Of a stretch of 64,000 nucleotides of DNA, positions 1 to 31,100 are shown piece after piece (position 1 is the first letter of the stretch; each line of letters begins with the position of its first letter). The position numbers and the translations under genes were made by a program. The DNA comes from Neoechinorhynchus agilis. Lineage: Eukaryota > Animalia > Acanthocephala. The notes under the pieces were generated by a model. The model saw nothing but the letters and a program-made list of their open reading frames with translations. It searched no databases and was not told the DNA's origin. The stretch lies in assembly GCA_051530055.1 (NCBI GenBank), contig CM121342.1, positions 7,944,691-8,008,690 on the forward strand, read 5' to 3'.

Positions 1-3000
1 GCGGTGGATCCGCTCGCGACGGAGAGAGACGATAGTCTTGAACGTTCTTTTTTAAAGGAGGAGAGTGGAGAAATAAGGAGATCCGTGGCGGTAGTGGTGG
101 CGGCGGCGGTGCGGATCGATCCACTCGCGACGGAGGCATATGGAATACAGTCTTGAACGTTCTTTTTTTAAAGGAGGAAAGATTGGAGAAATAAGGAGAT
201 CCGTGGCGGTGGATCCACTCGCGACGGAGAGAGACGATAGTCTTGAATCTTTTTTAAAGGAGGAAAGATTGGAGAAATAAGGAAATCCGTGGCGGTGGAT
301 CCGCTCGCGACGGAGAGAGACGATAGTCTTGAACGTTCTTTTTTAAAGGAGGAGAGATTGGAGAAATAAGGAGATCCGTGGCGGTGGATCCGCTCGCGAC
401 GGAGAGAGACGATAGTCTTGAACGTTCTTTTTTAAAGGAGGAGAGTGGAGAAATAAGGAGATCCGTGGCGGTAGTGGTGGCGGCGGCGGTGCGGATCGAT
501 CCACTCGCGACGGAGGATATGATAGTCTTGAACGTTCTTTTTTAAAGGAGGAAAGATTGGAGAAATAAGGAGATCCGTGGCGGTGGATCCACTCGCGACG
601 GAGAGAGACGATAGTCTTGAACGTTCTTTTTTAAAGGAGGAGAGTGGAGAAATAAGGAGATCCGTGGCGGTGGATCCGCTCGCGACGGAGAGAGACGATA
701 GTCTTGAACGTTCTTTTTTAAAGGAGGAGAAATTGGAGAAATAAGGAGATCCGTGGCGGTGGATCCACTCGCGACGGAGAGAGACGATAGTCTTGAACGT
801 TCTTTTTTAAAGGAGGAGAGTGGAGAAATAAGGAGATCCGTGGCGGTGGATCCGCTCGCGACGGAGAGAGACGATAGTCTTGAACGTTCTTTTTTAAAGG
901 AGGAAAGATTGGAGAAATAAGGAGATCCGTGGCGGTGGATCCTGCGACGGAGAGGACGATAGTCTTGAACGTTCTTTTTTAAAGGAGGAGAGTGGAGAAA
1001 TAAGGAGATCCGTGGCGGTGGATCCGCTCGCGACGGAGAGAGACGATAGTCTTGAACGTTCTTTTTTAAAGGAGGAGAGATCCACTGGACGGAGAAGATA
1101 GTCTTGAACGTTCTTTTTTAAAGGAGGAAGATTGGAGAAATAAGGAGATCCGTGGCGGTGGATCCGCTCGCGACGGAGAGAGACGATAGTCTTGAATCTT
1201 CTTTTTTAAAGGAGGAGAGATTGGAGAAATAAGGAGATCCGTGGCGGTGGATCCGCTCGCGACGGAGAGAGACGATAGTCTTGACGTTCTTTTTTAAAGG
1301 AGGAGAATTGGAGAAATAAGGAGATCCGTGGCGGTGGATCCCTGGACGGAAGACGATAGTCTTGAACGTTCTTTTTTAAAGGAGGAGAGTGGAGAAATAA
1401 GGAGATCCGTGGCGGTGGATCCCTCGCGACGGAGAAGATAGTCTTGAACGTTCTTTTTTAAAGGAGGAAAGATTGGAGAAATAAGGAGATCCGTGGCGGT
1501 GGATCCACTTGTGACGGAGAGAGACGATAGTCTTGAACGTTCTTTTTTAAAGGAGGAGAGTGGAGAAATAAGGAGATCCGTGGCGGTGGATCCGCTCGCG
1601 ACGGAGAGAGACGATAGTCTTGACCGTTCTTTTTTAAAGGAGGAGAAATTGGAGAAATAAGGAGATCCGTGGCGGTGGATCCACTTGTGACGGAGAGAGA
1701 CGATAGTCTTGAATCTTCTTTTTTTAAAGGAGGAGAGATTGGAGAAATAAGGAGATCCGTGGCGGTGGATCCGCTCGCGACGGAGAGAGACGATAGTCTT
1801 GAACGTTCTTTTTTAAAGGAGGAAAGATTGGAGAAATAAGGGGATCCGTGGCGGTGGATCCACTTGTGACGGAGAGAGACGATAGTCTTGAACGTTCTTT
1901 TTTAAAGGAGGAGAGTGGAGAAATAAGGAGATCCGTGGCGGTGGATCCGCTCGCGACGGAGAGAGACGATAGTCTTGACCGTTCTTTTTTAAAGGAGGAG
2001 AAATTGGAGAAATAAGGAGATCCGTGGCGGTGGATCCACTTGTGACGGAGAGAGACGATAGTCTTGAATCTTCTTTTTTTAAAGGAGGAGAGATTGGAGA
2101 AATAAGGAGATCCGTGGCGGTGGATCCGCTCGCGACGGAGACGATAGTCTTGAACGTTCTTTTTTAAAGGAAGAGTGGAGAAATAAGGAGATCCATGGCG
2201 GTTGATCCACTTGTGACGGAGAGAGACGATAGTCTTGAACGTTCTTTTTTAAAGGAGGAGAGTGGAGAAATAAGGAGATCCGTGGCGGTGGATCCGCTCG
2301 CGACGGAGAGAGATAGAATATAGTCTTGAACGTTCTTTTTTTAAGAAGGAGGAAAGATTGGAGAAATAAGGAAATCCGTGGCGGTAGTGGTGGCGGCGGG
2401 GTGGGATCGATCCACTCGCGACGGAGAGAGACGATAGTCTTGACCGTTCTTTTTTAAAGGAGGAGAAATTGGAGAAATAAGGAGATCCGTGGCGGTGGAT
2501 CCGCTCGCGACGGAGAGAGACGATAGTCTTGACCGTTCTTTTTTAAAGGAGGAGAAATTGGAGAAATAAGGAGATCCGTGGCGGTGGATCCACTTGTGAC
2601 GGAGAGAGACGATAGTCTTGAATCTTCTTTTTTAAAGGAGGAGAGTGGAGAAATAAGGAGATCCGTGGCGGTGGATCCGCTCGCGACCTTTTTTAAAGGA
2701 GGAAAGATTGGAGAAATAAGGGGATCCGTGGCGGTGGATCCACTTGTGACGGAGAGAGACGATAGTCTTGAACGTTCTTTTTTAAAGGAGGAGAGTGGAG
2801 AAATAAGGAGATCCGTGGCGGTGGATCCGCTCGCGACGGAGAGAGATAGAATATAGTCTTGAACGTTCTTTTTTAAGAAGGGGGTAATAGGAGATCGGTG
2901 GCGGCGTGTATCGATCCATGCGCTTAGAAGCGAGACGATTCTCTTGAACCTTCTTTTTTTAAAGGAGGTGAGATTGGAGAAAATAGGAGATTGGCAGTTG

Positions 3001-3055
3001 TGGATCCACTCGCGACGGAGACACATGGAATACAGTCTTGAACGTTCTTTTTTTG
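1..3055. repeat. Tandem satellite array, 87-89 bp monomer with dimer (~171-179 bp) and tetramer (~355 bp) higher-order structure; continues past the left window edge
   Basis: Unit GCGGTGGATCCGCTCGCGACGGAGAGAGACGATAGTCTTGAACGTTCTTTTTTAAAGGAGG(AGAGT/AAAGATT)GGAGAAATAAGGAGATCCGTG is repeated more than 30 times. The CCACTTGTGA variant recurs at 1505, 1681, 1860, 2036 and 2207. Terminal monomers at ~2860-3055 are degenerate. Confidence 0.97.
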
Positions 3056-4921: not shown

Positions 4922-5489
4922 TTTTGTGTTCCGTGTATAAAAGAGGAACTGTGACTAACAAGAGAATGGATACTATAGTAGGATCCATCTTTGGGTGAGA
5001 TGCGATTCTTGGATACATTATAGCAACGCCATCTCGGTACAAAAGGATTCGTCCCGGCAAACATTTGTTTCGCTCTCGATACTTTCCCAGTATCCTTCGC
5101 ATTATTGTTTCTAAGTTATAAACGATTTCTATACTTGACTTTGAAGGTTGAGGATTTTTCTGAAGGGAAATCATGGAAACTTAGGAATGAGGAACAAAGT
5201 CAACCGAAGCTACAACGGCGGCTATCGATACTCGGCAAAGGTGTCCTTGACTATTCAGAACCCGATGGGTAACATCGAGACCGACAAACATGGTCCTTCC
5301 GTAATTTCCAATTTGTGGATTAAACTTAAATGGCACTGGATTTCGTGTTAGACTCACGTTAACACCGCCGAGCTTTGCACAAAGTTTGTTACAAATATTT
5401 ACGCTCCTATCTCGTCTTTTTATCGCTTTGTCAGTGATGAACTGAGTAATCGATCCGCTGACTAGTTCCGCGGCAGCCTTAACTGCTGG
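4922..5489 (-). pseudogene. Argonaute MID-PIWI domain pseudogene fragment
   Basis: My translation from 5489: PAVKAAAELVSGSITQFIT...NICNKLCAKLGGVN...TMFVGLDVTH...SIAAVVASVD...(TAA at 5181-5183)...SIEIVYNLETIMRRILGKYRERNKCLPGRILLYRDGVA. After a deletion and frameshift it continues ISPKDGSYY...VSH...HGT. These match the Argonaute motifs KINAKLGGxN, GxDVTH, SIAAVVGS, RIIFYRDGV and THPxxxDFYLxSHxxxQGT. No introns are evident. Confidence 0.88.
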
Positions 5490-5669
5490 GGTTGAATTTT
5501 AAGCAAATCCACGAAGATCGACTGATTTGGCCGTTTTTAAATATGTAGAAGGCAATCAATTAGTTTATTATACTTTAAAGAAGATGGATTACCGTCAAGA
5601 AGTGCAAAAACCATTAAAAAACGCGAAAAAGCTTTAAAGCAATCGTCCATCTTAAATAATATCGATCAT
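5489..5669 (+). repeat. ~180-bp templated copy of palindrome-arm sequence (6585-6763, mirrored at ~15810-15990) sitting at the outer junction of the left arm
   Basis: GGGTTGAATTTTAAGCAAATCC...AATATCGATCAT matches 6585-6763. It joins the arm start through a 2-nt AT microhomology. Confidence 0.9.
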
Positions 5670-6305
5670 GATACGCTCCTACGCAACCTCCACAATAATC
5701 GCTCCCACGTCACCCGTATCATTCCCCTTTCCTGAACCTCTAAAGAAATCACACACATAAAAGATTTCTGCACCAATCACAAACTCCATCTCAATTTCTC
5801 TAAATGCTTCGAAATGATCCCTTCATTCTCACACAACTCCAAATCTTCCCCCGAGATTCTAAATGACATCCTACGATTCGCCTCCCTAAGAATTCTGAGT
5901 CTCCAATTTCAATCAAATCTGAAATGGGACTTGCGCCAAATGAGTTAAGCAGCTTCCGTGTTTAATTTCGACCATCGAAGTAATCTCGTTGGAAGAAGTA
6001 AGCGCTAGATTTGAAAGGCCGACAGTCGTGACATCGGATAAGAACCGTGTGTTTCTTGAGTTGCCGTTTATTGACGATTCCTCCTATCATAGTTTATCCA
6101 GAGTGGAAGACGAAATTAGATAAAATGCGATGTTGAAGCAAGCACCTCGCACCTTCCTGTACCTACGCTCCTTGATTCCTACCCGAATAGGAATCCCTCC
6201 GACCAGATATTACCTCCCGAACGAACCGTCCCTCGGCTGCATATATCCATATTAACGGAAAAGGACCCAAAGGTACATGGGTCCTCCTAAACCTTTCGTT
6301 GTATT
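5668..6305 (+). mobile_element. Heavily deleted L2/CR1-group LINE 3' relic inside the left arm
   Basis: Segments match 61725-62970 of the most complete copy; it ends in the GGACCC-AAAGGTACAT-GGGTCC stem-loop (6263-6284). Confidence 0.8.
5935..6140 (+). mobile_element. Probable Penelope-like element relic (RT-to-GIY-YIG linker) embedded in the LINE relic; mirrored at ~16430-16635
   Basis: Translation ...LISTIEVISLEEVSARFERPTVVTSDKNRVFLELPFIDDSSYHSLSRVEDEIR* resembles the PLE linker motif VxLxLP(Y/F)xxxxSxxL. The segment is absent from the other LINE copies. Confidence 0.4.
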
Positions 6306-7183
6306 AACAGTATTCTCCTTTGCGACAACTTCACGATTGAAGTACGCCTCAAAGTAACACAATGATTCCTGACAGTAGGCCGAAAAGTGTATTTCATAAA
6401 TTAAAATACAGACCGAATGATTGAATAGAATTATCCTAGATATCCGGCATCTCAGGCAAGTAAATCGGACGCTTTAATTACGATACAGAATGTTTGATTT
6501 CTATCAATAATCAGATTAAACGGATGTCGAAATAGCACACTTTGTTCAAAATGGCGCTTAGCGATTGAAGAAATATCGTTTGTAGGGTTGAATTTTAAGC
6601 AAATCCACGAAGATCGACTGATTTGGCCGTTTTTAAATATGTAGAAGGCAATCAATTTGGTTATTATACTTTAAAAATGGATTACCGCCAAGAAGTGCAA
6701 AAACCATTAAAAAACGCGAAAAAGCTTTAAAGCAATCGTCCATCTTAAATAATATCGATCATTAGCTCCGAACTTTTTAGCGATTATTTCGATAAGCGGA
6801 TACGATCGACGAAATAATCATTTTAAAGAAGTTGTAGATTTATGTGACGGCGGGGAAAAATTACATATCAAAGACTGACTTTAATTGAAATATTTCGTCC
6901 AATCACACTGGACTTCTTCAGTCAATTATTGTTTGCAAGTATTTACGACTCCATTTTATGTTTAACATGATTTTTGTGTTCTTCTTTTGATGATTAAGAA
7001 AATCGACACTGATTTATTAATTCGATTGCTTCGTTGGACTTCTAAAAACAGGTAGATTAAATTTGTGACAGAGAACCATCAGTTTCTACTATTCTTTTCA
7101 CGAAAAAACACAGAATTATTATAGAAGCCGATGATGAATGTTTATTGAAATCAACAAATCCGATTTTTAATACACAGACACAT

Positions 7184-7633
7184 TCAATTTTTATTGACAA
7201 AGTTGTCATAGATTGATTTGTAAAGAGCCAGGTCCCTGAGCATGAACGTTTTTCGTCTTGCATGACAAATAAGGAGACGGCTGAGTTCCATCATACCGAC
7301 CAATTCATTCTCCGCAGCCAATTGAAAAATATCCAGCGCTGCGCTTGTGACTCGGAAACGCTTCGAGGTCACTGACATAAAAATCGAACGGAACGTCTTT
7401 ACAAAAGATAATTTCGGGATACTGTATTGTCTTCGGCATCTTCTCCGTGAACTATTATTTACAATAGGATTCCACTGATCACGTTGAACACGCCTCTTAA
7501 ATTCCACCATAACAGTATCCAAATTATCCAGAATCTCCTTATTCTTTTCGTCTAACTCCTTCTGCTCCAATTCTTCACTTATAACCAGCTTGCGTTTTCT
7601 TCTCTCAGTCCTAGCGGTATTTGGTCGCACCAT
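7184..7633 (-). CDS. Divergent histone H3 variant, CenH3/CENP-A-like (copy 1), 149 aa
   Basis: The C-terminal ~80 aa align with the H3 fold: IPKLSFVKTFRSIFMSVTSKRFRVTSAALDIFQLAAENELVGMMELSRLLICHARRKTFMLRDLAL vs [65 protein letters not shown]. Long unrelated N-terminal tail; ATG start; downstream AATAAA. Confidence 0.85.
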   Translation of the reverse strand: MVRPNTARTERRKRKLVISEELEQKELDEKNKEILDNLDTVMVEFKRRVQRDQWNPIVNNSSRRRCRRQYSIPKLSFVKTFRSIFMSVTSKRFRVTSAALDIFQLAAENELVGMMELSRLLICHARRKTFMLRDLALYKSIYDNFVNKN

Positions 7634-8725
7634 TTTTATGAAAACAAAAAAACTTGATCACAGAGCTTTGATAATCGATTCTGTCGTGTCTTGGATTTTC
7701 TCGACGCAGCTTTTCTGTCATAAATGCGTTTTAGGCTTGGAACGCGTGGTAATCACGTACGTGGAGTGCCTTTATCGCCGCAGCAAAGTCATTAGTTATG
7801 ACAGGTTTAATGATGTGCGTTTGATGCTTTAAGAAATAGTTATTTGTTGTTGTTTTTATGTGCTGGTTTGCCTCTTCAGTCTCTATTGCTTGTAAGAAGA
7901 AATCGATCTTTCCTATAGATTTTATAAAAAGGACACAATTTCGACTAATGCAAAAATAAAGGAAACGTCGATATGGAACCATTGCCGAATAGGAGTCGAT
8001 TCGCGGATGTTGCGACCTGTTTGTGTCTCCCCACATCACACATTTTAGATTACTTCCCTGTTGAAGTCACGGAGAAAGCTAGGCAAATAAATCAACAATG
8101 TATGTGGGTCGTACAAATGTCAAATTAAATTACAATTCAATTACGCTGAATAGAAAAAGTTTCATAGACACGACTTGAGCGCTTCATAATTAATTTCTCG
8201 ATTGAAAAGATGTCTTTCAATTCTTATTTAAAAAATCCAGTTTGATCAGAACTAAAAACGAAGATTTAATGTCTTGAGGCTTCGGAAAACATAACCTAAA
8301 AAATCATGTCAAAGTTGTTTAAATTAAAAACTCCACGAGCAATCGCCATGATTTAGTTACTTAGGGTTTGAAACGACTCTAAAGTCCGCAGAGCAAATCC
8401 AAAAATCGTGCCAAATGATTATTCATCGAAAACTCGGAGAAATTCAGCTACTTTTGATTTGGAATTTAAATCGCCCTTTTATATAAATGATTGAGCATCA
8501 ACATTTTAGATACCTATAAATCCGAATCAAAAAATTATGTCAAATAATTGCGAATTATAATCTTCGATTACAAATCATTAGAAATTCGGCTCATTCAAAA
8601 TAACTTTTTGTCCTCTGTTCAAAGGACGAAGATGGGTCGACATTTCAGAAGCTTATAAATCAAACAATTATGTCAAATAGCCGTAAACACTTGCAAACAA
8701 TGAAATTTCACTCATTTCATACATT

Positions 8726-11630
8726 ATGAGTAACGATCAAGTAATCGATGAGAGATTTTTGATGAAGGATCTACTTAGTGGATTACCAAACTTCATAAAC
8801 ATTTGCAAACAACCAAAAACGAATATGAGGAAATCAGACGATGGATATTGCGACGGATCAGATTCACCTCCCAGCCTTATACCTCCAACAAGGCTCAGGA
8901 CGATCTCAGCATCGGATAGGTTTTGCCGAAATTCCAAATTACATCACAATGTGTTCAAATCGCCTACAATCGACGCTGGTGACGCAGATAATTTGAACGC
9001 GCCACTTATAGATCACGTTCAACCTGAGAAGACCAACGCTGCCGGGCTCCCACGCGTCTCTACTGGTTTGTGTCCGGTTTGCGGTAAGTTTTTTAAATTA
9101 ACAAATATGGGGGTTTTGTTTGTCCATGGTCCCCGGGATCTCCGCTGTAGTGGGTCTGGTTCTCCACCACAATTAACCGAACCTTTCGTGCATGAGACCC
9201 CTCAGATCACCACGGACTCTATTTCGATACCTGATATCGTGCGGGTTCTGCCCAGAAACGTCCTGAAACGGATCCCTAAAGGCGCGCGATATCTGGTCGC
9301 CAAAGCATTTACGTGATTGCTCAACGATTGCCTGCAAACGAACTGTGCGCCTTCATGGGCACGGCTCTTCGCTTTCCCGCGCTTAGTCCTCTGCACCAGC
9401 GGTGATTCTGGGGTGTCTTTGACATCAACAATCAAGGAAAGGTTAGCCTCCTTTGAACAAATATTTAACAATTTTGAAAGGAATCTCGGCGAGGTTCGTA
9501 AGGGACGCACGAAGAAAGTTTCGCTGCCGTTTTTTAAAACGATCACTGACTGAGCGTGTCTCTTCGAAGCTTGCGGACGGGGATGTTCGGGGGGCTGTTC
9601 GGTTATTGTCATCCAACGACAGTTTCGCAAATCGGTCAAAACACCCATGGAGTAGTGGCAGTTTTGAAATTCTATCTCCTCCTATACAAAACAGGACACC
9701 CACTCAAATTTTAGAGTTAAAAAAAGCCATAGAATCTTTTGCAAATGGTTCGGGTCACGGGCTTGACGAGCTAAGGCCTCAGCACCTAAAGGACATGATG
9801 TCCTTTTCAACTGGCGAAGCAGCTCTCTCTCTCTAGGAAGTGCGCTTTTTCGAACAGTCGACCGCTTGACTGGAGAGGACCTGAACCCCGTTGCAAAGGA
9901 CCTATTTTTCGGAGCATCATTATGTGCTCTCACAAAAAAAGAAGGTGGGATCCGTCCCATCGCTGTATCTTCGACGATACGCCGACTTGCAGGAAAAATT
10001 CTCTGCAAACGTATTACAGAGAAAACCGGGCAGCAATTTCGTCCAGTCCAACTGGGCTGCTGCACATCCTGCGGGGCGGAAGCTATCGTCCACTCGCTCC
10101 GAAACTTTGCTACGAGTAGCTCAGCGCCGTGCGTGATTCTTAAGTGCGATTTTCGGAACGCCTTTAACTCTCTTAATAGAGAAAGCATGTTCCGCGCAAT
10201 TAGGGATCACGCACCAGAAGCCTTCCAGTATTTTCTCAATGCCTACGGGACGGCGACTCCTTTGCTTTTTGAAGACCACCTCATTTGGTCCGAAAGAGGA
10301 GTGCCGCAAGGAGATAATCTCGGTCCAATCGCATTCTCCCTACAGTAAATACAATAGCGCATTCTCTTCATTCCAGCTTCAACGCTTGGTACTTGGATGA
10401 CGCTACGCTCGGAGGTGATCCCTCCGTTGTACTGCACGATTTGGAGACGCTGATTAGGGAGACCTCGAAGATGGGCATTGAGCTCAATGCTGGAAAATGT
10501 GAGCTCCTTGTATTGAATATTCAAGACGCCGCCAGTCCAAAAACTAATGACTGGGTTCGAGGCCGTAGCTCCAGGTCTGAAACTCGTGACTCGGGCGCAA
10601 CTCAGCCTCCTGGGCACTTGCGTCTTCGATTCAAATGTGGAAGATGAGATCGGCCATATCATACCGAAACTTTCGCTGCTGTGCGATAGGGTGTGCGCTT
10701 TCTCGGCCCATGAAGCCTTGTTTCTGATAAAGAACGCGCTCTTCATCCCCAAATTATTGTACAAGGTTCGCACAGTAACATTTTTCAAACATTAGGAAGG
10801 ATTGGCTAAGCTGTACGATAAGGTGAGGGCTCGTCTCGAGCGTATTTCAAATGTCCAGCTCTCAGATGAGGCGTTGCGACAAGCTTCTTTGCCTGTGTCA
10901 TCTGAGGGATTGGGAATTCGGGCACTAGTGGACCTCGCTTTGCCGGCCTTTCTTCGATCGTTTGAGGGGAGCCCACCAGTACTGGGAAAATTTTGAAGGA
11001 ACGATGATCGCAGTGTCCTAAAGACTTGGTCTTCCGATATGCACGCCCGATCGCTGTCGATGTGGGTCTTTGGTTGATGCTTTCGAGCGAAACGGTCTCG
11101 TTTGCCGAAAGCCAGGAGGAAGGTTCTCACGCCATTCTGTGATCAATAGCGTAATTTCTCGGGCGTTTAAAACCGGGAACTTCCCCAACATCTTGGAACC
11201 CGCCCATCTTTGTCGACTAGACGGCCGTCGACCTGACGGAATTACGGTCTTTCCGTTGCGGGAGGGCAAATGCCTACCCTGGGACGCCGCGTGTGTTGAC
11301 ACCCTCGCAGTAAGCAACATCCCCCACTTCCTCGAAATCGCCGGTGCTGCCGTCAGTGCAGCGGAAGGGAGAAAGGTACGAAAATATAGAGAATTAGCAA
11401 GGGCCCACTATTTTGTCCCCTTTGGGGTAGAGACGTATGGAGCGCTCGGCAGCTTGGCACTCACTCTGCTCCAGGATCTCTCGAAGAAATTGATAGAGGC
11501 AACCGGAGACTCAAGAGCAGGCGTATTCCTTCGACAAAATATCTCGATGACAGTACAACGAGGCAATGCTGCCAGCGTGATGGCGACGGTCGAGGAAGGA
11601 CAAAAGCTGGAATTTGACGGAAGGTGGTGA
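8726..11630 (+). mobile_element. CRE-clade (R2 group) non-LTR retrotransposon, near full length, inactivated by stops and frameshifts
   Basis: N-terminal zinc-finger-like CPVCGK...H..C and LKRIPKGAR motif; RT motifs CDFRNAFNSL, GVPQGD and YLDD; C-terminal RH...RPDG...WD restriction-like endonuclease. About 90% similar by eye to 50611-53012. Confidence 0.9.
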
Positions 11631-11650
11631 GTGTGCTTCAAACAGATTGT

Positions 11651-12791
11651 GTTCAAAATCGAGTATGTCCATTATCTATGCAAAACAAATCTAAATTGTA
11701 GAAGCCAACATGTAACTGATCAGAAACACGTTTATTTTCTCTCTAAAAATTCACTAATCTATATTCCCTCCCCTCCGATATTCCACACATCGATCGTTTA
11801 ATTCCGACATTTCCTCAAGGTTTGCCACATCTAAAACACGAACATTATAGCGTTATCCCACGGACTGATTATCATCGGGGAACAATCAAACAGCCTGTTC
11901 TTGGACTCATTGTCCACTAAATTCTGCCATGAACTAGATGGTAATTTCAAACTGAGCTCAAATCAATAATTTCGCAGAAAAAAGGCACTCGATCACATTT
12001 GAGTACTTCTAGATTCTTAAAAATAACTTGGACCAAGTTGTCATTTGACCTTCATCGCTAAAGTTAAATGTCTCTCACCAAAACAATCAAACTTCCACTA
12101 ATTAGAACATGAAAAAAGGTTTTATACGTTCGATTAATTAAGAATATATAAGTATAAACCTTGTTTCCACCCTAAAAGCATTTCTAATACGATATCTGTC
12201 TGTAGAAATACAATCTAGTAGCTTTGGAACACAACCTTTTGCTCCTCGATAATATGCGAGATTTTCATTCGAAACAAAATCGCAAGAGCACATCGAGAAA
12301 TGGGTGACCATTTACGAAGTTTTCGAATACACAAACGATGCTGAAAAGCACACTCGTAGATCTCTCTTTAATTTGGACTTGATTGACATAGGGTCAAATG
12401 ACGAGTTGGTCCAAGTTATTTTTAAGAATCTAGAAGTACTCAAATGTGATCGAGTGCCTTTTTTCTGCGAAATTATTGATTTGAGCTCAGTTTGAAATTA
12501 CCATCTAGTTCATGGCAGAATTTAGTGGACAATGAGTCCAAGAACAGGCTGTTTGATTGTTCCCCGATGATAATCAGTCCGTGGGATAACGCTATAATGT
12601 TCGTGTTTTAGATGTGGCAAATCTTGAGGAAATGTCGGAATTAAACGATCGATGTGTGGAATATCGGAGGGGAGGGAATATAGATTAGTGAATTTTTAAA
12701 GAGAAAATAAACGTGTTTCTGATCAGTTGCATGTTGGCTTCTACAATTTAGATTTGTTTCGCATAGATAATGGACATACTCGATTTGGAAC
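11651..12791. repeat. Nested inverted repeat: 400-bp arms (11651-12050 and 12392-12791) around a 341-bp loop
   Basis: GTTCAAAATCGAGTATGTCC...GTCATTTGACC is the reverse complement of GGTCAAATGAC...GGACATACTCGATTTGGAAC, with only a few mismatches. Confidence 0.95.
12253..12700 (+). pseudogene. Decayed coding-like segment (possibly LRR-type) running from the loop into the right arm of the nested inverted repeat
   Basis: Protein-like reading in three frames (YARFSFETKSQEHIEKWVTIYEVFEY...VIFKNLEVLKCDRVPFF; LSLKLPSSSWQNLVDNE...; RYNVRVLDVANLEEMSEL...), followed by AATAAA near 12706. Confidence 0.35.
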
Positions 12792-13182
12792 GCTTTTTGG
12801 CGAGGTTTTTTAGATCAGATTAAAAAAGATAAAAAAATAGCGAATTTTATAAAGCCTGTGGATTTGAAGGTTGCGTTGTGCCAGTACAATTGAACGAATT
12901 AGCAGTGAAAGAAAAACGAGTTGATACTATGAATTGCCCCGCAGTGAGTATAAAATCATGGTTTAATCCTTTCGTAAATCGATTTCTCTTAAATAAGAGA
13001 GCAAAGTGGAAATCAATGAAACCAAAAGCTAAGCCGCAGATAAGCTATTTGCTATTTTGAAGTTATGCCCGAATTTATTCCTTAAATGGAGGCAATTGTT
13101 TTTAAATATTTTATTTATAAAACGAAAAATCCCGAAATCATATAAATCTTTTGGTCGTTTAGAAGAATTGCATTTCAGAATA

Positions 13183-13543
13183 ATGTCATCGACCGACGAT
13201 GAACCTGAGAAATTCTCCGTGAATGTTCAGACGAACAATAGGAAATACCAATTTTTGCTGGGTAATCTCATTCCGGACGCTGACGATTTTGTACGCTACA
13301 TGTGCCTTAGAGGTGATTGAATCGTAGATTTAAAGATTTTAAACGAAATATCGGTCTTTAACAGGTTCCGCTGGAGTTTATGAAGAACCTGGTGTCGCTG
13401 AAATCGCTTCAATCGTAGATGGAGCAGTCTACAACCGAACTAAGCAATCGACTTTGTCGTACATGCCATCAATCCACAGAAGCTTCAATGAGTTTCATAT
13501 AACAAAGAAAGATGACGAAGATGGATCTGATTCATGTCTTTAG
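13183..13543 (+). CDS. Two-exon orphan gene, 102 aa (exons 13183-13312 and 13365-13543)
   Basis: Removing a 52-nt GT..AG intron (13313-13364) keeps the frame open: MSSTDDEPEKFSVNVQTNNRKYQFLLGNLIPDADDFVRYMCLRG|SAGVYEEPGVAEIASIVDGAVYNRTKQSTLSYMPSIHRSFNEFHITKKDDEDGSDSCL*. The intron size matches the PSMA2 introns. Confidence 0.55.
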
Positions 13544-13699
13544 ACCATTTATATTGCAATTAATTTCATCTTTGGCCCTCTAGCCATATCGATTTTGCAA
13601 TATTTGTAGTAGTAAGGTTCGAATCTGAGATATAATTCGTCTTATTAAATTGCGATCAACTCTAAAAATATTGCTTGATTTCAACGTTTGATCTCACAT

Positions 13700-14090
13700 T
13701 CTAAAATGTCGATTTGTCGACGTCCTTCCAACTGATAGCGACCTTTTTATAAATTTAAAAAACAGCTAAATTTCTAATCGGAGCTTATAATTGGAAATTT
13801 TTGAGCTTCTGAAATGTCGATCCTTCGTCGTCCTTTAAACTGACGACGAAAAATTTTAAATTAAAATAAATTTGCAATCGAACATTATAATTCGCAATTA
13901 TTTGACATAATTGTTTGATTTATAAGCTTCTGAAATGTCGACCCATCTTCGTCCTTTGAACAGAGGACAAAAAGTTATTTTGAATGAGCCGAATTTCTAA
14001 TGATTTGTAATCGAAGATTATAATTCGCAATTATTTGACATAATTTTTTGATTCGGATTTATAGGTATCTAAAATGTTGATGCTCAATCA
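13700..14090. repeat. Degenerate tandem repeat, ~107-138 bp units, spanning the inner end of the right arm
   Basis: AAATGT(C/T)GA-anchored units at ~13705, 13812, 13933 and 14071; TTATAATTCGCAATTATTTGACATAATT occurs twice. Confidence 0.6.
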
Positions 14091-16903
14091 TTTATATAAA
14101 AGGGCGATTTAAATTCCAAATCAAAAGTAGCTGAATTTCTCCGAGTTTTCGATGAATAATCATTTGGCACGATTTTTGGATTTGCTCTGCGGACTTTAGA
14201 GTCGTTTCAAACCCTAAGTAACCCAAATCATGGCGATTGCTCGTGGAGTTTTTAATTTAAACAACTTTGACATGATTTTTTAGGTTATGTTTTCCGAAGC
14301 CTCAAGACATTAAATCTTCGTTTTTAGTTCTGATCAAACTGGATTTTTTTAAATAAGAATTGAAAGACATCTTTTCAATCGAGAAATTAATTATGAAGCG
14401 CTCAAGTCGTGTCTATGAAACTTTTTCTATTCAGCGTAATTGAATTGTAATTTAATTTGACATTTGTACGACCCACATACATTGTTGATTTATTTGCCTA
14501 GCTTTCTCCGTGACTTCAACAGGGAAGTAATCTAAAATGTGTGATGTGGGGAGACACAAACAGGTCGCAACATCCGCGAATCGACTCCTATTCGGCAATG
14601 GTTCCATATCGACGTTTCCTTTATTTTTGCATTAGTCGAAATTGTGTCCTTTTTATAAAATCTATAGGAAAGATCGATTTCTTCTTACAAGCAATAGAGA
14701 CTGAAGAGGCAAACCAGCACATAAAAACAACAACAAATAAATCATTTCTTAAAGCATCAAACGCACATCATTAAACCTGTCATAACTAATGACTTTGCTG
14801 CGGCGATAACCCACGTGATTACCACGCGTTCCAAGCCTAAAACGCATTTATGACAGAAAAGCTGCGTCGAGAAAATCCAAGACACGACAGAATCGATTAT
14901 CAAAGCTCTGTGATCAAGTTTTTTTGTTTTCATAAAAATGGTGCGACCAAATACCGCTAGGACTGAGAGAAGAAAACGCAAGCTGGTTATAAGTGAAGAA
15001 TTGGAGCAGAAGGAGTTAGACGAAAAGAATAAGGAGATTCTGGATAATTTGGATACTGTTATGGTGGAATTTAAAAGGCGTGTTCAACGTGATCAGTGGA
15101 ATGCTATTGTAAATAATAGTTCACGGAGAAGATGCCGAAGACAATACAGCATCCCGAAATTATCTTTTGTAAAGACGTTCCGTTCGATTTTTATGTCAGT
15201 GACCTCGAAGCGTTTCCGAGTCACAAGCGCAGCGCTGGATATTTTTCAATTGGCTGCGGAGAATGAATTGGTCGGTATGATGGAACTCAGCCGTCTCCTT
15301 ATTTGTCATGCAAGACGAAAAACGTTCATGCTCAGGGACCTGGCTCTTTACAAATCAATCTATGACAACTTTGTCAATAAAAATTGAATGTGTCTGTGTA
15401 TGAAAAATCGGATTTGTTGATTTCAATAAACATTCATCATCGGCTTCTATAATAATTCTGTGTTTTTTCGTGAAAAGAATAGTAGAAACTGATGGTTCTC
15501 TGTCACAAATTTAATCTACCTGTTTTTAGAAGTCCAACGAAGCAATCGAATTAATAAATCAGTGTCGATTTTATTAATCATCAAAAGAAGAACACAAAAA
15601 TCATGTTAAACATAAAATGGAGTCGTAAATACTTGCAAACAATAATTGACTGAAGAAGTCCAGTGTGATTGGACGAAATATTTCAATTAAAGTCAGTCTT
15701 TGATATGTAATTTTTCCCCGCCGTCACATAAATCTACAACTTCTTTAAAATGATTATTTCGTCGATCGTATCCGCTTATCGAAATAATCGCTAAAAAGTT
15801 CGGAGCTAATGATCGATATTATTTAAGATGGACGATTGCTTTAAAGCTTTTTCGCGTTTTTTAATGGTTTTTGCACTTCTTGGCGGTAATCCATTTTCTT
15901 TAAAGTATAATAAACTAATTGATTGCCTTCTACATATTTAAAAACGGCCAAATCAGTCGATCTTCGTGGATTTGCTTAAAATTCAACCCTACAAACGATA
16001 TTTCAATCGCTAAGCGCCATTTTGAACAAAGTGTGCTATTTCGACATCCGTTTAATCTGATTATTGATAGAAATCAAACATTCTGTATCGTAATTAAAGC
16101 GTCCGATTTACTTGCCTGAGATGCCGGATATCTAGGATAATTCTATTCAATCATTCGGTCTGTATTTTAATTTATGAAATACACTTTTCGGCCTACTGTC
16201 AGGAATCATTGTGTTACTTTGAGGCGTACTTCAATCGTGAAGTTGTCGCAAAGGAGAATACTGTTAATACAAAGAAAGGTTTAGGAGGACCCATGTACCT
16301 TTGGGTCCTTTTCCGTTAATATGGATATATGCAGCCGAGGGACGGTTCGTTCGGGAGGTAATATCTGGTCGGAGGGATTCCTATTCGGGTAGGAACTAAG
16401 GAGCGTAGGTACAGGGAGGTGCGAGGTGCTTGCTTCAACATCGCATTTTATCTAATTTCGTCTTCCACTCTGGATAAACTATGATAGGAGGAATCGTCAA
16501 TAAACGGCAACTCAAGAAACACACGGTTCTTATCCGATGTCACGACTGTCGGCCTTTCAAATCTAGCGCTTACTTCTTCCAACGAGATTACTTCGATGGT
16601 CGAAATTAAACACGGAAGCTGCTTAACTCATTTGGCGCAAGTCCCATTTCAGATTTGATTGAAATTGGAGACTCAGAATTCTTAGGGAGGTTACTCGTAG
16701 GATGTCATTTAGAATCTCGGGGGAAGATTTGGGGTTGTGTGAGAATGAAGGGATCATTTCGAAGCATTTAGAGAAATTGAGATGGAGTTTGTGATTGGTG
16801 CAGAAATCTTTTATGTGTGTGATTTCGTTATAGGTTCAGGAAAGGGGAATGATACGGGTGACGTGGGAGCGATTATTGTGTAGGTTGCGTAGGAGCGTAT
16901 CAT
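13899..16903. repeat. Right arm of the ~3.0-kb inverted duplication
   Basis: Reverse complement of 5668-8679 with scattered substitutions and small indels. Confidence 0.97.
14938..15387 (+). CDS. Divergent histone H3 variant, CenH3/CENP-A-like (copy 2), 149 aa
   Basis: Differs from copy 1 by 3 nt (2 synonymous; one P/A change in QWN(P/A)IV, N-terminal of the fold). AATAAA at 15425-15430; no histone stem-loop seen. Confidence 0.85.
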   Translation: MVRPNTARTERRKRKLVISEELEQKELDEKNKEILDNLDTVMVEFKRRVQRDQWNAIVNNSSRRRCRRQYSIPKLSFVKTFRSIFMSVTSKRFRVTSAALDIFQLAAENELVGMMELSRLLICHARRKTFMLRDLALYKSIYDNFVNKN

Positions 16904-17339
16904 AAATGCAAAGTAGGGCATCGTTGCAGAAAATTTGGATCGGAAGCCGAATTGAATAAGTGTAATTTTTAGAATGAAGATTGATAGAAGGTGTGCTTTA
17001 AAGCATCTCTCTAAGATTTTAGAGAAGGAAGGTAAGAAAGAGATGGGTCGAAAACTTGGAGCAGGTTTACCCGATCTGTTTTAAGCAATTAGGGAAGATT
17101 CCGGCCTTGAAACTTTGGTTGATTATATGGGTCAGTGGATCAATTAAATCAGGGGTGATAAAGCGTAGAGCCCAGTAGGGAATGGGAAAGTTAGTGGATG
17201 ATTTGCGTGGCGTTTTTTTGTATTTTTCCATCAGAAGTGACTGGGAGAGGAGGTTTGCCATCTTTTCGTGCAGAGGATGTCTTGTTTTCATCGAGTTCAA
17301 CGAATGAAAAATTGAAGCTTTACTGTAATCAAAGCACAA
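16265..17339 (-). mobile_element. L2/CR1-group LINE relic; extends beyond the right arm, so it marks the probable donor side
   Basis: Mirror of 5668-6305 plus the upstream RT-proximal segment IPYWALRFITPDLIDPLTHIINQSFKAGIFPNCLK. Confidence 0.8.
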
Positions 17340-18750
17340 TTTTCATGCTGTCCATTTACCGCTGAACAGTAAATCTATCGCCGAACAAAAAAAGAGAAAT
17401 AAGAGTCGTGAATATTTCATAACGATGAAATCAAAGTTCAGATCGAACAATACTATAATTCGCATGTAAACTCATTTTGAAATATTTCAGATATTCGACG
17501 TTTTCCTCGTTCGAAATATCTAAATTCAAAATATGCTTTGTGATCGCTTTCGCGACCTTTTTGAGGATTTATGGTCGTTTACGTCTTCACTTATTTCCTT
17601 TTGGAGCTCATTCGATATTTTTAAATAAAACAATTGACCGGAAACTAGACAATTGTTAACCAATTCATTTTAGTGCTACAAAAACAACAAAATTAATTTG
17701 AAACAATTAAAAATTCATGGTGAAATATTGCTTGCATTTATACGAAAATAAAAATTACGAGGCAAAGGTTAGTTATCAAGCATAGACAAAACTGAATTTC
17801 GGTTTATTCTTCTTTTGAGCGATTTTTGCACATTTTACGCCGATTTATTGATAAAAATGATTTTGGATATATTATGAAGACAGATTATCAAAAACGTATT
17901 TTGCAAATAATCTTATAAATTAGACTTTCCGTATAGTTGAAACTTCCTAAAAGATTGACTATTCAATTTTGGTTGTTTGTCACTTTTTTGCACCTTTCGA
18001 TGGTTTGGTTACCAGATCTAAAGTCTCTTAAACAATTAGGCAATGGAGATCAAAAGATTAAGGGAGATTGTTTTGTTTATGATTCTTAGAAGACACCATG
18101 CGCCATCTTTTTTATATTTTTGGTGCTTCAAAAGGTTTCTGTATTTTTTTAAATCTTAATCCAACCGTTTTTAAAAATAATGCGAGAAATCAGTTAAAGA
18201 CTGAGTGCAGAATAAGAAGCTACTTTGCCGAATCGTTTCGCTTTTGACCAATTTAATCTCACCAATTTATCCTTAATTTTAATTCTTAACACTATTTTGA
18301 GCAGTGTTCAAAAGTACAACATGTTCACTTTACTCCGTTCATAATAATAAAATTTTAGCTTTATTAAAGAACATAGTTCCATTAGTATGACAATGGATAC
18401 TAGAAGTCGTCGATGCAGATTATCTTTATGGAACTTTTTTAATTTCAGGCATCGTCCTAATAAAAGATATTTTGTTATTGTAATGACAATGCAGTCGCAC
18501 AAAAAAACTGAATTAAAGTCAAATTGGAATAAGGTGATAAGAAATGTAACTACCTTCAAGTGTTAATACAGGTTTGCGAGGAAAATAACGCAGAATTATA
18601 GAAATAAAAATATTCAGCTTCAATATACGCGCAGATCTTTAAAAATGACTATAAAGTCGCTATTCAAATGATCCACAAAAACAAATTTACTAATTTTTAA
18701 AAGTTGAAGGTAAAAGCTTTTAAAATTACAAAAATTGAGTATCCCACAAA

Positions 18751-25139: not shown

Positions 25140-28100
25140 ACAATAGCGACCGACTTACATTTATAGACTTCCTTTCTTGCGCACTTCATGGATTCCCGTG
25201 CTTTTTCAGTCGCTTCTCCCTTCTTAGTTTTCCATTAATTGGTTTTCTGAATCAACTTCCAACCCAACATTAAAAGTGCTCACCAATATAACAAGTGCCC
25301 GCGCGTTAATTTTTTACAGTAACGTCATTGTCGGATGAAGAAATCTGCGTTGTGTGCGTGGAATGTCCCTATGTTTTCTCGCGGGTTTCATCTCGTTTTT
25401 CGGATAGTTTCCTAAATTGGTGATCGTAAATATTGATGGTGACCGAGCGGAAACGATCGATTTACATTTATTGACCATGCCTTTCTTGCGCACTTCATGG
25501 ATCTCTGTTGAGTTTATAACTCCCTTCTCAGTTCTTAGTTTTCCATAAATTGGTTTTCTGAATTATATTCGAAACGAACGTTCAGCGTAGGCAGCAATAT
25601 AACAAGTGTCCGCGCGTTAATTTTTAAGTGACGTCATTGTCGGATGAAGAAATCGGCGTTGTGTGCGTTGAATTTCCCTAAGTTTTCTCGCGGGTTTCAT
25701 ATCGGGTTTCGGCTGATTTGGCGATCGTAAATATTGATGGTTATCGAGCGGCAACGATCGATTTGAATTTATTGACCATTCTTTCCTTGCGCACTTCATG
25801 GATCTCTGTTCAATTTGTAACTCCCTTCTCAGTTCTTAGTTTTCCATAAATTGGTTTTCTGAATTATATTCGAAACGAACGTTCAGCGTAGGCAGCAATA
25901 TAACAAGTGCCCGCGCGTTAATTTTTAAGTGACGTCATTGACGGGTGAAGAAATCGGCGTTGTGTTCTCAGAATGTCCCTAAGTTTTCTCGCGGGTTTCA
26001 TCTCGGTTTTCGGCTAATTTGGTGATCGTAAATATCGATGGCGACCGTGCGGAAAGGATCGATTTACATTTATTGACCATGCCTTCCTTGCGCACTTCAT
26101 GGATCTCTGTTGAGTTTATAACTCCCTTCTCAGTTTTTAATTTTCCAAAAATTGGTTTTCTTAATTATATTCGAAACGAACGTTCAGCGTAGGCAGCAAT
26201 ATAACAAGTGTCCGCGCGTTAATTTTTTACAGTGACGTCATTGTCGAACGAAGAAATCGGCGTTGTGTGCGTTGAATGTCCCTAAGTTTTCTCGCGGGTT
26301 TCATCTCGGTTTTCGGCTACTTTCCTTATTTGGCGATCGTAAATATTGATGGTTATCGAGCGGAAACGATCGATTTGAATTTATTGACCATTCCTTCCTT
26401 GCGCACTTCATGGATCTCTGTTCAATTTGTAACTCCCTTCTCAGTTCTTAGTTTTCCATAAATTGGTTTTCTGAATTATATTCGAAACGAACGTTCAGCG
26501 TAGGCAGCAATATAACAAGTGCCCGCGCGTTAATTTTTAAGTGACGTCATTGTCGGATGAAGAAATCGGCGTTGTGTGCGTTGAATGTCCCTAAGTTTTC
26601 TCGCGGGTTTCATATCGGGTTTCGGCTGTTTCCTAATTTTGTGATCGTAAATATTGATGGCGATCGAGCGGAAACGATCGATTTACATTTATTGACCATT
26701 CCTTCCTTGCGCACTTCATGGATCCCTGTTCAATTTATAACTCGCTTTTCAGTTCTTAGTTTTCTATAAATTGGTTTTCTGAATTATATTTTAAAAGAAC
26801 GTTCAGCGTAGGCAGCAATATAACAAGTGCCCGCGCGTTAATTTTTAAGTGACGTCATTGTCGGGTGAAGAAATCGGCGTTGTGTTCTCAGAATGTCCCT
26901 AAGTTTTCTCGCGGGTTTCATCTCGGTTTTCGGCTAATTTCCAATTTGGTGATCGTAAATATTGATGGCGACCGAGCGGAAACGATCGATTTACATTTAT
27001 TGACCATTCCTTCCTTGCGCACTTCATGGATCCCTGTTCAATTTATAACTCCCTTCTCAGTTCTTAGTTTTCCATAAATTGGTTTTCTGAATTATATTCG
27101 AAACGAACGTTCAGCGTAGGCAGCAATATAACAAGTGCCCGCGCGTTAATTTTTAAAGTGACGTCATTGTCGGATGAAGAAATCGGCGTTGTGTGCGTTG
27201 AATGTCCCTAAGTTTTCTCGCGGGTTTCATATCGGGTTTCGGCTGATTTCCTGATTTTGTGATCGTAAATATTGATGGCGACCGAGCGGAAACGATCGAT
27301 TTAAATTTATTGACCATTCCTTCCTTGCGCACTTCATGGATCTCTGTTCAATTTATAACTCGCTTCTCAGTTCTTAGTTTTCCATAAATTGGTTTTCTGA
27401 ATTATATTCGAAACGAACGTTCAGCGTAGGCAGCAATATAACAAGTGCCCGCGCGTTAATTTTTAAAGTGACGTCATTGTCGGATGAAGAAATCGGCGTT
27501 GTGTGCGTTGAATGTCCCTAAGTTTTCTCGCGGGTTTCATATCGGGTTTCGGCTAATTTTGTGATCGTAAATATTGATGGCGATCGAGCGGAAACGATCG
27601 ATTTACATTTATTGACCATTCCTTCCTTGCGCACTTCATGGATCCCTGTTCAATTTATAACTCGCTTCTCAGTTCTTAGTTTTCTATAAATTGGTTTTCT
27701 GAATTATATTCGAAACGAACGTTCAGCGTAGGCAGCAATATAACAAGTGCCCGCGCGTTAATTTTTAAGTGACGTCATTGTCGGGTGAAGAAATCGGCGT
27801 TGTGTTCTCAGAATGTCCCTAAGTTTTCTCGCGGGTTTCATCTCGGGTTTCGGCTAATTTCCAATTTGGTGATCGTAAATATTGATGGCGACCGAGCGGA
27901 AACGATCGATTTACATTTATTGACCATTCCTTCCTTGCGCACTTCATGGATCCCTGTTCAATTTATAACTCGCTTCTCAGTTCTTAGTTTTCCATAAATT
28001 GGTTTTCTGAATTATATTCGAAACGAACGTTCAGCGTAGGCAGCAATATAACAAGTGCCCGCGCGTTAATTTTTAAGTGACGTCATTGTCGGATGAAGAA

Positions 28101-31100
28101 ATCGGCGTTGTGTGCGTTGAATGTCCCTAAGTTTTCTCGCGGGTTTCATCTCGGGTTTCGGCTAATTTGGTGATCGTAAATATTGATGGCGACCGAGCGG
28201 AAACGATCGATTTACATTTATTGACCATTCCTTCCTTGCGCACTTCATGGATCTCTGTTCAATTTATAACTCCCTCTCAGTTCTTAGTTTTCCATAAATT
28301 GGTTTTCTGAATTATATTCGAACGAACGTTCAGCGTAGGCAGCAATATAACAAGTGCCCGCGCGTTAATTTTTAAAGTGACGTCATTGTCGGATGAAGAA
28401 ATCGGCGTTGTGTGCGTTGAATGTCCCTAAGTTTTCTCGCGGGTTTCATATCGGGTTTCGGCTGATTTGGCGATCGTAAATATTGATGGCAATCGAGCGG
28501 TAACGATCGATTTGAATTTATTGACCATTCCTTCCTTGCGCACTTCATGGATCTCTGTTCAATTTATAACTCCCTTCTCAGTTCTTAGTTTTCCATAAAT
28601 TGGTTTTCTGAATTATATTCGAAACGAACGTTCAGCGTAGGCAGCAATATAACAAGTGCCCGCGCGTTAATTTTTAAGTGACGTCATTGTCGGATGAAGA
28701 AATCGGCGTTGTGTGCGTTGAATGTCCCTAAGTTTTCTCGCGGGTTTCATCTCGGTTTTCGGCTAATTTGGTGATCGTAAATATTGATGGCGACCGAGCG
28801 GAAACGATCGATTTACATTTATTGACCATTCCTTCCTTGCGCACTTCATGGATCCCTGTTCAATTTATAACTCCCTTCTCAGTTCTTAGTTTTCCATAAA
28901 TTGGTTTTCTGAATTATATTCGAAACGAACGTTCAGCGTAGGCAGCAATATAACAAGTGCCCGCGCGTTAATTTTTAAAGTGACGTCATTGTCGGATGAA
29001 GAAATCGGCGTTGTGTGCGTTGAATGTCCCTAAGTTTTCTCGCGGGTTTCATCTCGGTTTTCGGCTAATTTGGTGATCGTAAATATTGATGGCGACCGTG
29101 CGGAAAGGATCGATTTACATTTATTGACCATTCCTTCCTTGCGCACTTCATGGATCCCTGTTCAATTTATAACTCCCTTCTCAGTTCTTAGTTTTCCATA
29201 AATTGGTTTTCTGAATTATATTCGAAACGAACGTTCAGCGTAGGCAGCAATATAACAAGTGCCCGCGCGTTAATTTTTAAGAGTGACGTCATTGTCGGAT
29301 GAAGAAATCGGCGTTGTGTGCGTTGAATGTCCCTAAGTTTTCTCGCGGGTTTCATCTCGGTTTTCGGCTAATTTGGTGATCGTAAATATTGATGGCGACC
29401 GTGCGGAAAGGATCGATTTGAATTTATTGACCATTCCTTCCTTGCGCACTTCATGGATCTCTGTTCAATTTATAACTCCCTGTCAGTTCTTAGTTTTCCA
29501 TAAATTGGTTTTCTGAATTATATTCGAAACGAACGTTCAGCGTAGGCAGCAATATAACAAGTGCCCGCGCGTTAATTTTTAAGAGTGACGTCATTGTCGG
29601 ATGAAGAAATCGGCGTTGTGTGCGTTGAATGTCCCTAAGTTTTCTCGCGGGTTTCATCTCGGTTTTCGGCTAATTTTGTGATCGTAAATATTGATAGCGA
29701 TCGAGCGGAAACGATCGATTTACATTTATTGACCATTCCTTCCTTGCGCACTTCATGGATCCCTGTTCAACTTATAACTCGCTTTTCAGTTCTTAGTTTT
29801 CTATTAATTGGTTTTCCGAATTATATTTTAAAAGAACGTTCAGCGTAGGCAGCAATATAACAAGTGCCCGCGCGTTAATTTTTAAGTGACGTCATTGTCG
29901 GGTGAAGAAATCGGCGTTGTGTTCTCAGAATGTCCCTAAGTTTTCTCGCGGGTTTCATCTCGGGTTTCGGCTAATTTCCCAATTTGGTGATCGTAAATAT
30001 TGATGGCGACCGAGCGGAAACGATCGCTTTACATTTATTGACCATTCCTTCCTTGCGCACTTCATGGATCCCTGTTCAATTTATAACTCCCTTCTCAGTT
30101 CTTAGTTTTCCATAAATTGGTTTTCTGAATTATATTCCAAAAGAACGTTCAGCGTAGGCAGCAATATTACAAGTACCCGCGAGTTAATTTTTAAGAGTGA
30201 TGTCATTGTCGGATGAAGAAATCGGCGTTGTGTGCGTTGAATGTCCCTAAGTTTTCTCGCGGGTTTCATATCGGGTTTCGGCTGATTTCCTAATTTTGTG
30301 ATCGTAAATATTGATGGCGACCGAGCGAAAACGATCGATCTACATTTATTGACCATTCCTTCCTTGCGCACTTCATGGATCCCTGTTCAATTTATAACTC
30401 GCTTCTCAGTTCTTAGTTTTCCATAAATTGGTTTTCTGAATTATATTCGAAACGAACGTTCAGCGTAGGCAGCAATATAACAAGTGCCCGCGCGTTAATT
30501 TTTAAGTGACGTCATTGTCGGATGAAGAAATCGGCGTTGTGTGCGTTGAATGTCCCTAAGTTTTCTCGCGGGTTTCATATCGGGTTTCGGCTGATTTGGC
30601 GATCGTAAATATTGATGGCAATCGAGCGGTAACGATCGATTTGAATTTATTGACCATTCCTTCCTTGCGCACTTCATGGATCTCTGTTCAATTTATAACT
30701 CCCTGTCAGTTCTTAGTTTTCCATAAATTGGTTTTCTGAATTATATTCGAAACGAACGTTCAGCGTAGGCAGCAATATAACAAGTGCCCGCGCGTTAATT
30801 TTTAAAGTGACGTCATTGTCGGATGAAGAAATCGGCGTTGTGTGCGTTGAATGTCCCTAAGTTTTCTCGCGGGTTTCATCGGGTTTCGGCTGATTTGGCG
30901 ATCGTAAATATTGATGGCAATCGAGCGGTAACGATCGATTTGAATTTATTGACCATTCCTTCCTTGCGCACTTCATGGATCTCTGTTCAATTTATAACTC
31001 CCTTCTCAGTTCTTAGTTTTCCATAAATTGGTTTTCTGAATTATATTCGAAACGAACGTTCAGCGTAGGCAGCAATATAACAAGTGCCCGCGCGTTAATT

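Follow-up and report, generated by a model that had tools for sequence, protein, structure and literature searches.

A transcribed, highly divergent H3-fold gene in three near-identical copies is a plausible but unproven candidate for the centromeric histone of the acanthocephalan Neoechinorhynchus agilis

We analysed a 64,000-nt stretch of chromosome CM121342.1 of the acanthocephalan Neoechinorhynchus agilis (assembly GCA_051530055.1), here called the window, which contains an inverted duplication with two intact genes for a 149-residue protein, P0001 in its left-arm form. The gene is real, transcribed and lineage-restricted, and it occurs in three near-identical copies rather than two. Judged from its sequence, P0001 is a plausible, though unproven, candidate for the worm's centromere histone. 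Coordinates below are those of the window unless they carry an L prefix, which marks a separately fetched locus.

Two inverted arms of about 3.0 kb, 5668-8679 and 16903-13899, are 98.7% identical in a 3018-column blastn alignment that contains 20 mismatches and 8 gap openings, and each carries one intact 149-aa open reading frame (ORF) that faces outward, as the original prediction described. In the left arm (copy c1, minus strand) the gene occupies 7184-7633 and encodes P0001, with Pro56; in the right arm (copy c2, plus strand) it occupies 14938-15387, encodes Ala56 and has no gene call in the public annotation. The two coding sequences (CDSs) differ at exactly 3 nt, in codon 46 (AAG/AAA, synonymous), codon 56 (CCT/GCT, Pro/Ala) and codon 71 (AGT/AGC, synonymous), again as predicted. 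This CDS divergence of 0.67% equals the arm-wide mismatch rate of 0.66%. Because the copies are so young, their intact ORFs are uninformative on selection.

A third copy, c0, lies outside the window on the same chromosome, roughly 19 kb before the window start as inferred from the offsets (unit L002:8965-11966, gene L002:10001-10450). Its protein is identical to the left-arm protein, and it is the only one of the three copies with a called gene on record. The order in its neighbourhood is TM9SF, EMC3, NUBPL, the c0 gene, a Piwi-domain fragment and CAMSAP. The genes in the arms had been described as recently duplicated twins; the recent duplication stands, and the twins prove to be two of three copies whose apparent source lies outside the palindrome.

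Relative to c0, the 3-kb arms are too short. The core of each copy, unit A, spans 5668-8679 in c1 and 13899-16903 in c2. Homology of the left copy extends outward to 5025 (99.15% identity to L002:8965-12609 over 3658 nt) and that of the right copy to 18220, with unit A of c2 being 99.73% identical to L002:8965-11966 and sharing the sharp proximal boundary. Beside c1 lies block B (4922-5669, minus strand), which combines a 181-bp copy of 15809-15989 (at 5489-5669) with an Argonaute/Piwi-domain fragment; on the c0 ORF of this block the Piwi domain scores 87 bits in Pfam. Block B is present in c0, where it is flanked by a 60-bp duplication, and absent from c2, which holds the empty site. A distal block C (16844-18220, plus strand) is confined to c2 and c0, where 16844-18220 aligns with L002:12910-14316; it is 97.3% identical between the two, includes multi-copy retroelement pieces and has two-copy depth.

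Sequencing depth agrees with three copies. We placed reads and contigs from two DNA runs, X1 and X8 (X8 being raw whole-genome shotgun, WGS), and two RNA runs, X2 and X3, on 12900-17900; these runs probably come from the assembly project and are thus not independent of the assembly. The k-mer depth in X1 is 130 in the spacer flank, 324-389 in the arm and 230 in the distal block shared by c0 and c2, a ratio of 1 : 2.8 : 1.8 where the assembly predicts 1 : 3 : 2, and read depth in X8 (about 20 : 48 : 30 over the same regions) is in agreement. In X1, G makes up about one third at 15075, where it is private to c1, and again about one third at 15103, where it is private to c2. The joint from 16901 to 15809, which is the unit A/block B junction of c0 and c1, is seen in one X1 contig and 15 reads of X8. 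The c2-private alleles reach only 1-22% in X8, which is possibly a pooled library, and hence these differences look polymorphic. The three-copy amplification itself appears to be polymorphic in the population.

The pattern of differences among the copies gives the amplification a direction. When the three copies are aligned, no position sets c0 apart from the other two, and every within-arm difference is private to c1 or c2. Over the unique 1.7 kb (13900 to about 15640), c1 and c2 have 5 private substitutions each and c0 has 0, so that c1 and c2 differ by 10 and c0 differs from either by 5. P56A, the sole amino-acid change among the copies, is private to c2. The palindrome arms are the most divergent pair, and the original suggestion that they are maintained by arm-to-arm gene conversion is therefore not supported. 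With no differences of its own, c0 looks like the source or a constrained copy. On these comparisons, c0 looks like a source-like copy beside NUBPL whose amplification gave three local copies, and the divergence of about 0.3% shows the apparent amplification to be very recent. A selection test across the three copies is powerless: the CDS has 3 substitutions, and the 1.29 kb of unique non-coding arm has 7.

All three copies begin at the identical base (ATTTGACATAATTG...), outside which the sequence is unrelated and the three proximal flanks are completely different. Distally the copies end at different points, next to retroelement pieces and the Piwi fragment. The one shared sharp end and the variable other ends beside a long interspersed nuclear element (LINE) led us to consider retro-transduction, yet the boundaries have no poly(A)/T run and no target-site duplication. 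Helitron-type ends are absent from them too. Two intervals inside the arms, 15642-15706 and 16240-17100, have WGS depth 5-20 times that of the remaining arm, and many joints that go back 36-60 positions cluster around 16340-16398; these intervals are multi-copy retroelement or mini-satellite pieces. The c1-private differences beyond the unique part lie mostly in or near them.

The gene is expressed. We take X2 and X3 as genuine RNA because a 52-nt GT..AG splice in the spacer (13310/13363) is absent from the DNA runs and because their depth falls to zero over several intergenic stretches. The libraries were poly-A captured and directional, from single whole worms (N. agilis genome/transcriptome study). 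The c2 ORF is covered in X3 by one 1150-nt contig (14568-15671) and in X2 by two contigs (14684-15074 and 15104-15665). The X3 contig represents the c0 haplotype only. In X2 RNA, the c1-private G at 15075 stands at about 39% and the c2-private G at 15103 at about 52%, and at least one worm therefore transcribes more than one variant. A motif search finds AATAAA poly(A) signals on the plus strand at 15376-15381 (overlapping the last codons), 15425-15430 and 15553-15558, and Rfam gives no match to the histone 3′ stem-loop in the window, in L002 (c0) or in the locus of the paralogue described below (L001). The transcript thus has the features of a replication-independent variant-type mRNA, polyadenylated and without a stem-loop, in line with the poly(A) signal noted originally.

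Several transcript details stand apart. The X3 transcript has G for A at 15426, within the second AATAAA, a natural variant of that poly(A) signal. The X3 contig also contains about 42 extra letters at approximately 14684-14687, the spot at which X1 DNA and X2 RNA contigs break; the spot lies about 250 nt before the start codon and is probably polymorphic for an insertion or deletion. A further X2 contig, 14315-14533, has a depth of 166, higher than that of the histone ORF, and departs from the genome at 14531 with 24 letters that match neither the window nor any fetched locus. Read on the minus strand, the junction is preceded by an AG acceptor, at a site present in all three copies. A possible explanation is a short transcript on the minus strand, just upstream of the histone gene, that receives a spliced leader by trans-splicing; bdelloid rotifers are known to add a 23-nt leader in this way (PMC1925144).

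The 5.2-kb spacer between the arms (8680-13898) is single copy by DNA k-mer depth (X1). On its plus strand lie frameshifted reverse-transcriptase ORFs of a degenerate retroelement of the non-LTR (non-long-terminal-repeat) type (8726-11630; RVT_1 at 46.9 bits on 9866-10348), adjoined by an inner foldback (11651-12791) with 400-nt inverted arms (11651-12050 and 12392-12791) that are 98% identical around a 341-nt loop. The spacer also holds a spliced poly-A orphan gene (13183-13543, plus strand), with exon 1 ending at 13312, the 52-nt GT..AG intron and exon 2 starting at 13365; its 102-aa product has no Pfam match. Repeat scans place an 89-bp satellite array (149-3053) to the left of the palindrome and a 301-bp array of 26 copies (25147-33085) to its right, which bears out the predicted position between two satellite arrays. 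The window has 0 Ns, and the locus sits 48% along the 16.4-Mb chromosome.

From its sequence matches and predicted structure, we are confident that the protein has an H3-type histone fold. It matches the Pfam Histone model at 36-37 bits, above the 26.4 cutoff, and among the best 60 of 174 PDB sequence matches all are H3 or Cse4, with the C-terminal phenylalanine covered only by Cse4 alignments. AlphaFold2 predicts P0001 with a mean predicted local distance difference test score (pLDDT) of 87, and of 93-97 across the fold (residues 74-148). The model contains a long helix (6-53), a weak short helix (56-64), α1 (74-88), loop 1, α2 (97-124) and α3 (132-148), and its α1-L1-α2-L2-α3 order is the canonical histone layout. 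The top 50 Foldseek matches in the PDB are all nucleosome or histone-core entries, headed by an H3T nucleosome with scores nearly equal throughout. Searches of the ESM Atlas by features and by shape return generic histone/H3 clusters only, and the H3 clusters superpose at 1.8 Å.

HMMER, run exhaustively against 1.84 billion representatives, gave only 79 weak matches (E up to 0.001). Besides P0001 itself, a single match aligns over nearly its full length: P0003, a 137-aa NCBI 'hypothetical protein' (ACOME3_002266) encoded on chromosome CM121341.1 of N. agilis. P0003 is 34% identical to P0001, has the same predicted architecture and shares motifs outside the fold (LD..MV.F, IVNNS, a basic linker before α1 and D.F at the C terminus). 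It also matches the Pfam CBFD_NFYB_HMF model at 27 bits. Word-index homology searches with P0001 as the query, and with a profile built from the two paralogues, found nothing beyond P0001 and P0003. That both genes are open and fold-compatible at 34% identity argues for long-term purifying selection, and in this sense the surviving paralogue pair, as read from its sequences, argues that the gene is functional and is the main evidence for it. The annotated P0003 start codon directly follows a pyrimidine run and CAG (ttttttattacag, then ATG; L001:5985-6003). This sequence resembles a 3′ splice or trans-splice acceptor, and the 5′ end or N terminus of P0003 may differ from the annotation.

Both paralogues keep residues that H3 uses to build a nucleosome: R72, R83, R116 and T118, which contact DNA, and H113 and D123 of the H3:H3′ four-helix bundle (H3 numbering, mapped by hand from the alignment). 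In both, loop 1 is one residue longer than in H3, as it is in labelled CenH3s of Cryptotermes (a termite) and Xylariaceae (fungi). At H3 positions Q68, F84 and T107, P0001 has V, V and S, and P0003 has V, F and S. P0001 has no sequence similarity to the canonical H3 tail (ARTK..., with K4, K9, K27 and K36). At the position of αN it has the short low-confidence helix (56-64) and P0003 has none; αN is not recognisable by sequence. The H3 tail and αN are replaced by the predicted long helix, the conserved IVNNS motif and an arginine-rich linker, and the protein ends in a hydrophobic C-terminal tail with D-x-F.

In a tree of 64 sequences and 81 columns, P0001 and P0003 are sisters (96/87) on a very long stem that joins an unresolved polytomy. 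The names of 30 HMMER matches (fungal and termite CenH3, mite, nematode and microsporidian proteins, fly 'H3.3-like' long branches) give no subtype signal. P0019, the closest fold outside the family, was tried as an anchor and discarded: it comes from an ENA metagenome contig, its relatives are all unnamed environmental proteins, and it supplies no taxonomic or functional information. That contig (L003) carries two adjacent divergent H3-fold genes, at 8001-8552 and 9225-9857. P0019 is the first of them, begins MARTKH, and has QYSIPK.SF and R-K-T in common with P0001 and P0003.

Whatever the role of P0001, its structural and genomic description as a lineage-restricted, extremely divergent H3-derived variant with replication-independent expression and a recent triplication is very probably correct. 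The single most likely role is that of a centromeric H3 (CenH3), an assignment that we hold tentatively and at less than even confidence. Loss of Q68, F84 and T107 is reportedly a CenH3 criterion, credited to Malik and Henikoff, and animal H3-derived proteins this divergent with an unrelated N-terminal part are usually CenH3. P0001 shares with CenH3, CENP-A, Cse4 and Cid an H3-type fold, an unalignable N terminus, the additional loop 1 residue, substitutions at all three of these positions, fast evolution and a polyadenylated mRNA; the unrelated tail, the longer loop and the V/V/S substitutions had all been noted in the original prediction and are seen in the alignment. Its hydrophobic C-terminal tail has a likeness in Cse4. 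A longer loop 1 is a published CenH3 criterion (PMC8015243). A CenH3 is to be expected in this worm because acanthocephalan chromosomes are monocentric (PMC12239011).

P0001 probably pairs with H4 and takes the place of H3 in some specialised nucleosomes, into which it would be deposited independently of replication. Were it the centromeric H3 of the worm, the long N-terminal helix might serve as a recruitment or chaperone handle, and the hydrophobic D-x-F tail as a possible contact for CENP-C. Several animals have multiple CenH3 paralogues, such as the Cid paralogues of Drosophila and HCP-3/CPAR-1 of Caenorhabditis. Like P0001 and P0003, CenH3 paralogue lineages share short N-terminal motifs, and cereal α and β CENH3 form a paralogue pair (PMC8603533). 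A fuller version, which we find doubtful as it stands, would make P0001 and P0003 two ancient paralogues of acanthocephalan CenH3, comparable to the Drosophila Cid lineages, with a helical N-terminal domain in place of the H3 tail and αN, one of them freshly triplicated in a satellite- and retroelement-rich chromosome midpoint.

Several results weigh against a centromeric role. A long, confidently predicted N-terminal helix is atypical for CenH3 tails, which are disordered, as is an αN that cannot be recognised by sequence. Fold identity to canonical H3 is only 34-36%, where CenH3 folds are typically about 50% conserved with H3, a typical value and no strict rule (PMC8015243). Among the best 60 of 174 PDB sequence matches the scores are near-equal, at 29.7 bits for Cse4 and 28.2 bits for H3.3; the Foldseek top 50 contain no CENP-A entry, and the best of them are ordinary H3 nucleosomes. 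F84 is retained in P0003, so that the paralogue has two of the three substitutions. The tree leaves the pair unplaced and gives no phylogenetic support for a CenH3 grouping, and labelled CenH3s are not monophyletic in it. No orthologue is known outside N. agilis, and the RNA contigs carry no strand, transcript ends or expression level. Of the original CenH3-like assignment, then, the substitutions, loop 1 and the N terminus hold; the low identity to H3, the level PDB scores and the proposed histone-fold phylogeny, which recovers the sister pair and stops there, keep the CenH3 identity itself at the level of a candidate.

Other roles would also fit parts of this evidence. As the main rival reading, P0001 may be a non-centromeric H3 replacement variant of the germline, sperm, oocyte or embryo that destabilises or marks nucleosomes in particular cells, the real CenH3 being encoded elsewhere, being P0003 or having been lost; we consider this possible, if unlikely. 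A young multi-copy amplification is typical of germline-expressed genes. Like P0001, the variants H3T/H3.4, H3.5, H3.Y and plant H3.10 are expressed independently of replication, lineage-restricted and often duplicated, but in such germline and tissue variants the H3 tail is retained and the sequence departs from H3 at a handful of residues, whereas P0001 shares about one third of the fold residues (roughly 35% identity) and has lost the whole tail. The nominal top Foldseek match is the testis variant H3T, in a field of nearly equal scores. Gonad and embryos make up most of an adult worm, and poly-A RNA from whole worms would therefore include a germline transcript. Animals commonly have tissue-specific H3 variants, often spermatogenic ones (PMC8015243). 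It is distinctly unlikely that P0001 is an orphan H3-derived fold that has left the nucleosome, whether as a partner in another histone-fold complex or as a captured or decaying gene with no host function. Extreme divergence, the lost tail and unrecognisable αN, the lack of homologues outside the species and the CBFD_NFYB_HMF match of P0003 would all suit such a protein. Against it, the H3-specific DNA-contact and four-helix-bundle residues and the basic linker before α1 are kept in both paralogues, both ORFs are intact despite divergence to 34% identity, and the best sequence and structure matches are always nucleosomal H3.

The layout of the locus admits two further explanations. One holds that only c0 matters and that the inverted pair is a functionless by-product of local segmental duplication or retroelement-associated copying, its copies redundant and drifting. 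This would account for the private changes in c1 and c2 and their absence from c0, for P56A being confined to c2, for the apparently polymorphic c2-private alleles in X8, for one sharp proximal boundary with distal ends that vary beside retroelement pieces and the Piwi fragment, for the single called gene and for the c0 haplotype alone in the X3 worm. Yet X2 RNA includes both c1- and c2-private alleles and each copy includes about 1 kb of upstream sequence, and we rate the explanation as rather improbable; it is, moreover, compatible with a CenH3 role and not exclusive of it. That the palindrome is an assembly artefact of uncollapsed haplotypes or mis-scaffolded pieces is very improbable indeed. 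The assembly does derive from a pool of about 50 worms, built from Illumina and ONT reads with MaSuRCA, purge_dups and Hi-C scaffolding in instaGRAAL (PMC12690905), the inverted orientation of the arms comes from the assembly alone, and none of the listed contigs bridges a boundary by at least 31 nt on both sides. Still, X1 depths of 130, about 360 and 230 fit one, three and two real copies, with the spacer flank at full single-copy depth; X8 agrees, copy-private alleles stand at about one third in X1, and the proximal flanks of the three copies are completely different, in a window free of Ns.

The arrangement recalls the ampliconic genes of primate X and Y palindromes in its inverted arms, its intact outward-facing copies of a multi-copy gene and its repeat-rich surroundings. 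It differs from them in the small size of the arms (3 kb) and in a spacer (5.2 kb) that is longer than the arm. The arms here are also less alike (98.7%) than either is to the third, direct copy about 26-34 kb away (99.2-99.7%), with no sign of arm-to-arm homogenisation. A 'palindrome' within one window can thus make up two thirds of a larger duplication, with the source beyond the window's edge.

Our literature search found no paper that describes a centromeric histone for any acanthocephalan or, more widely, any rotifer, and the N. agilis genome/transcriptome paper with one supplement and the syndermatan gene-loss paper make no mention of histones, centromeres or CENP. Acanthocephalans and rotifers have few, monocentric chromosomes (PMC12239011), and gene loss has removed nearly half of their conserved metazoan genes (syndermatan gene-loss literature). 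In this setting, the candidate gene and its paralogue make the acanthocephalan centromere directly testable, and the very young, apparently polymorphic three-copy amplification could be followed across worms. Whatever its role, P0001 shows how far an H3-derived histone can drift while its nucleosome-building residues stay, with about one third of the fold identical, the tail turned into a predicted helix and αN gone. If P0001 is indeed a CenH3, the locus would catch a CenH3 gene at a moment of amplification, beside a possible centromere and in a parasite lineage that has undergone massive gene loss.

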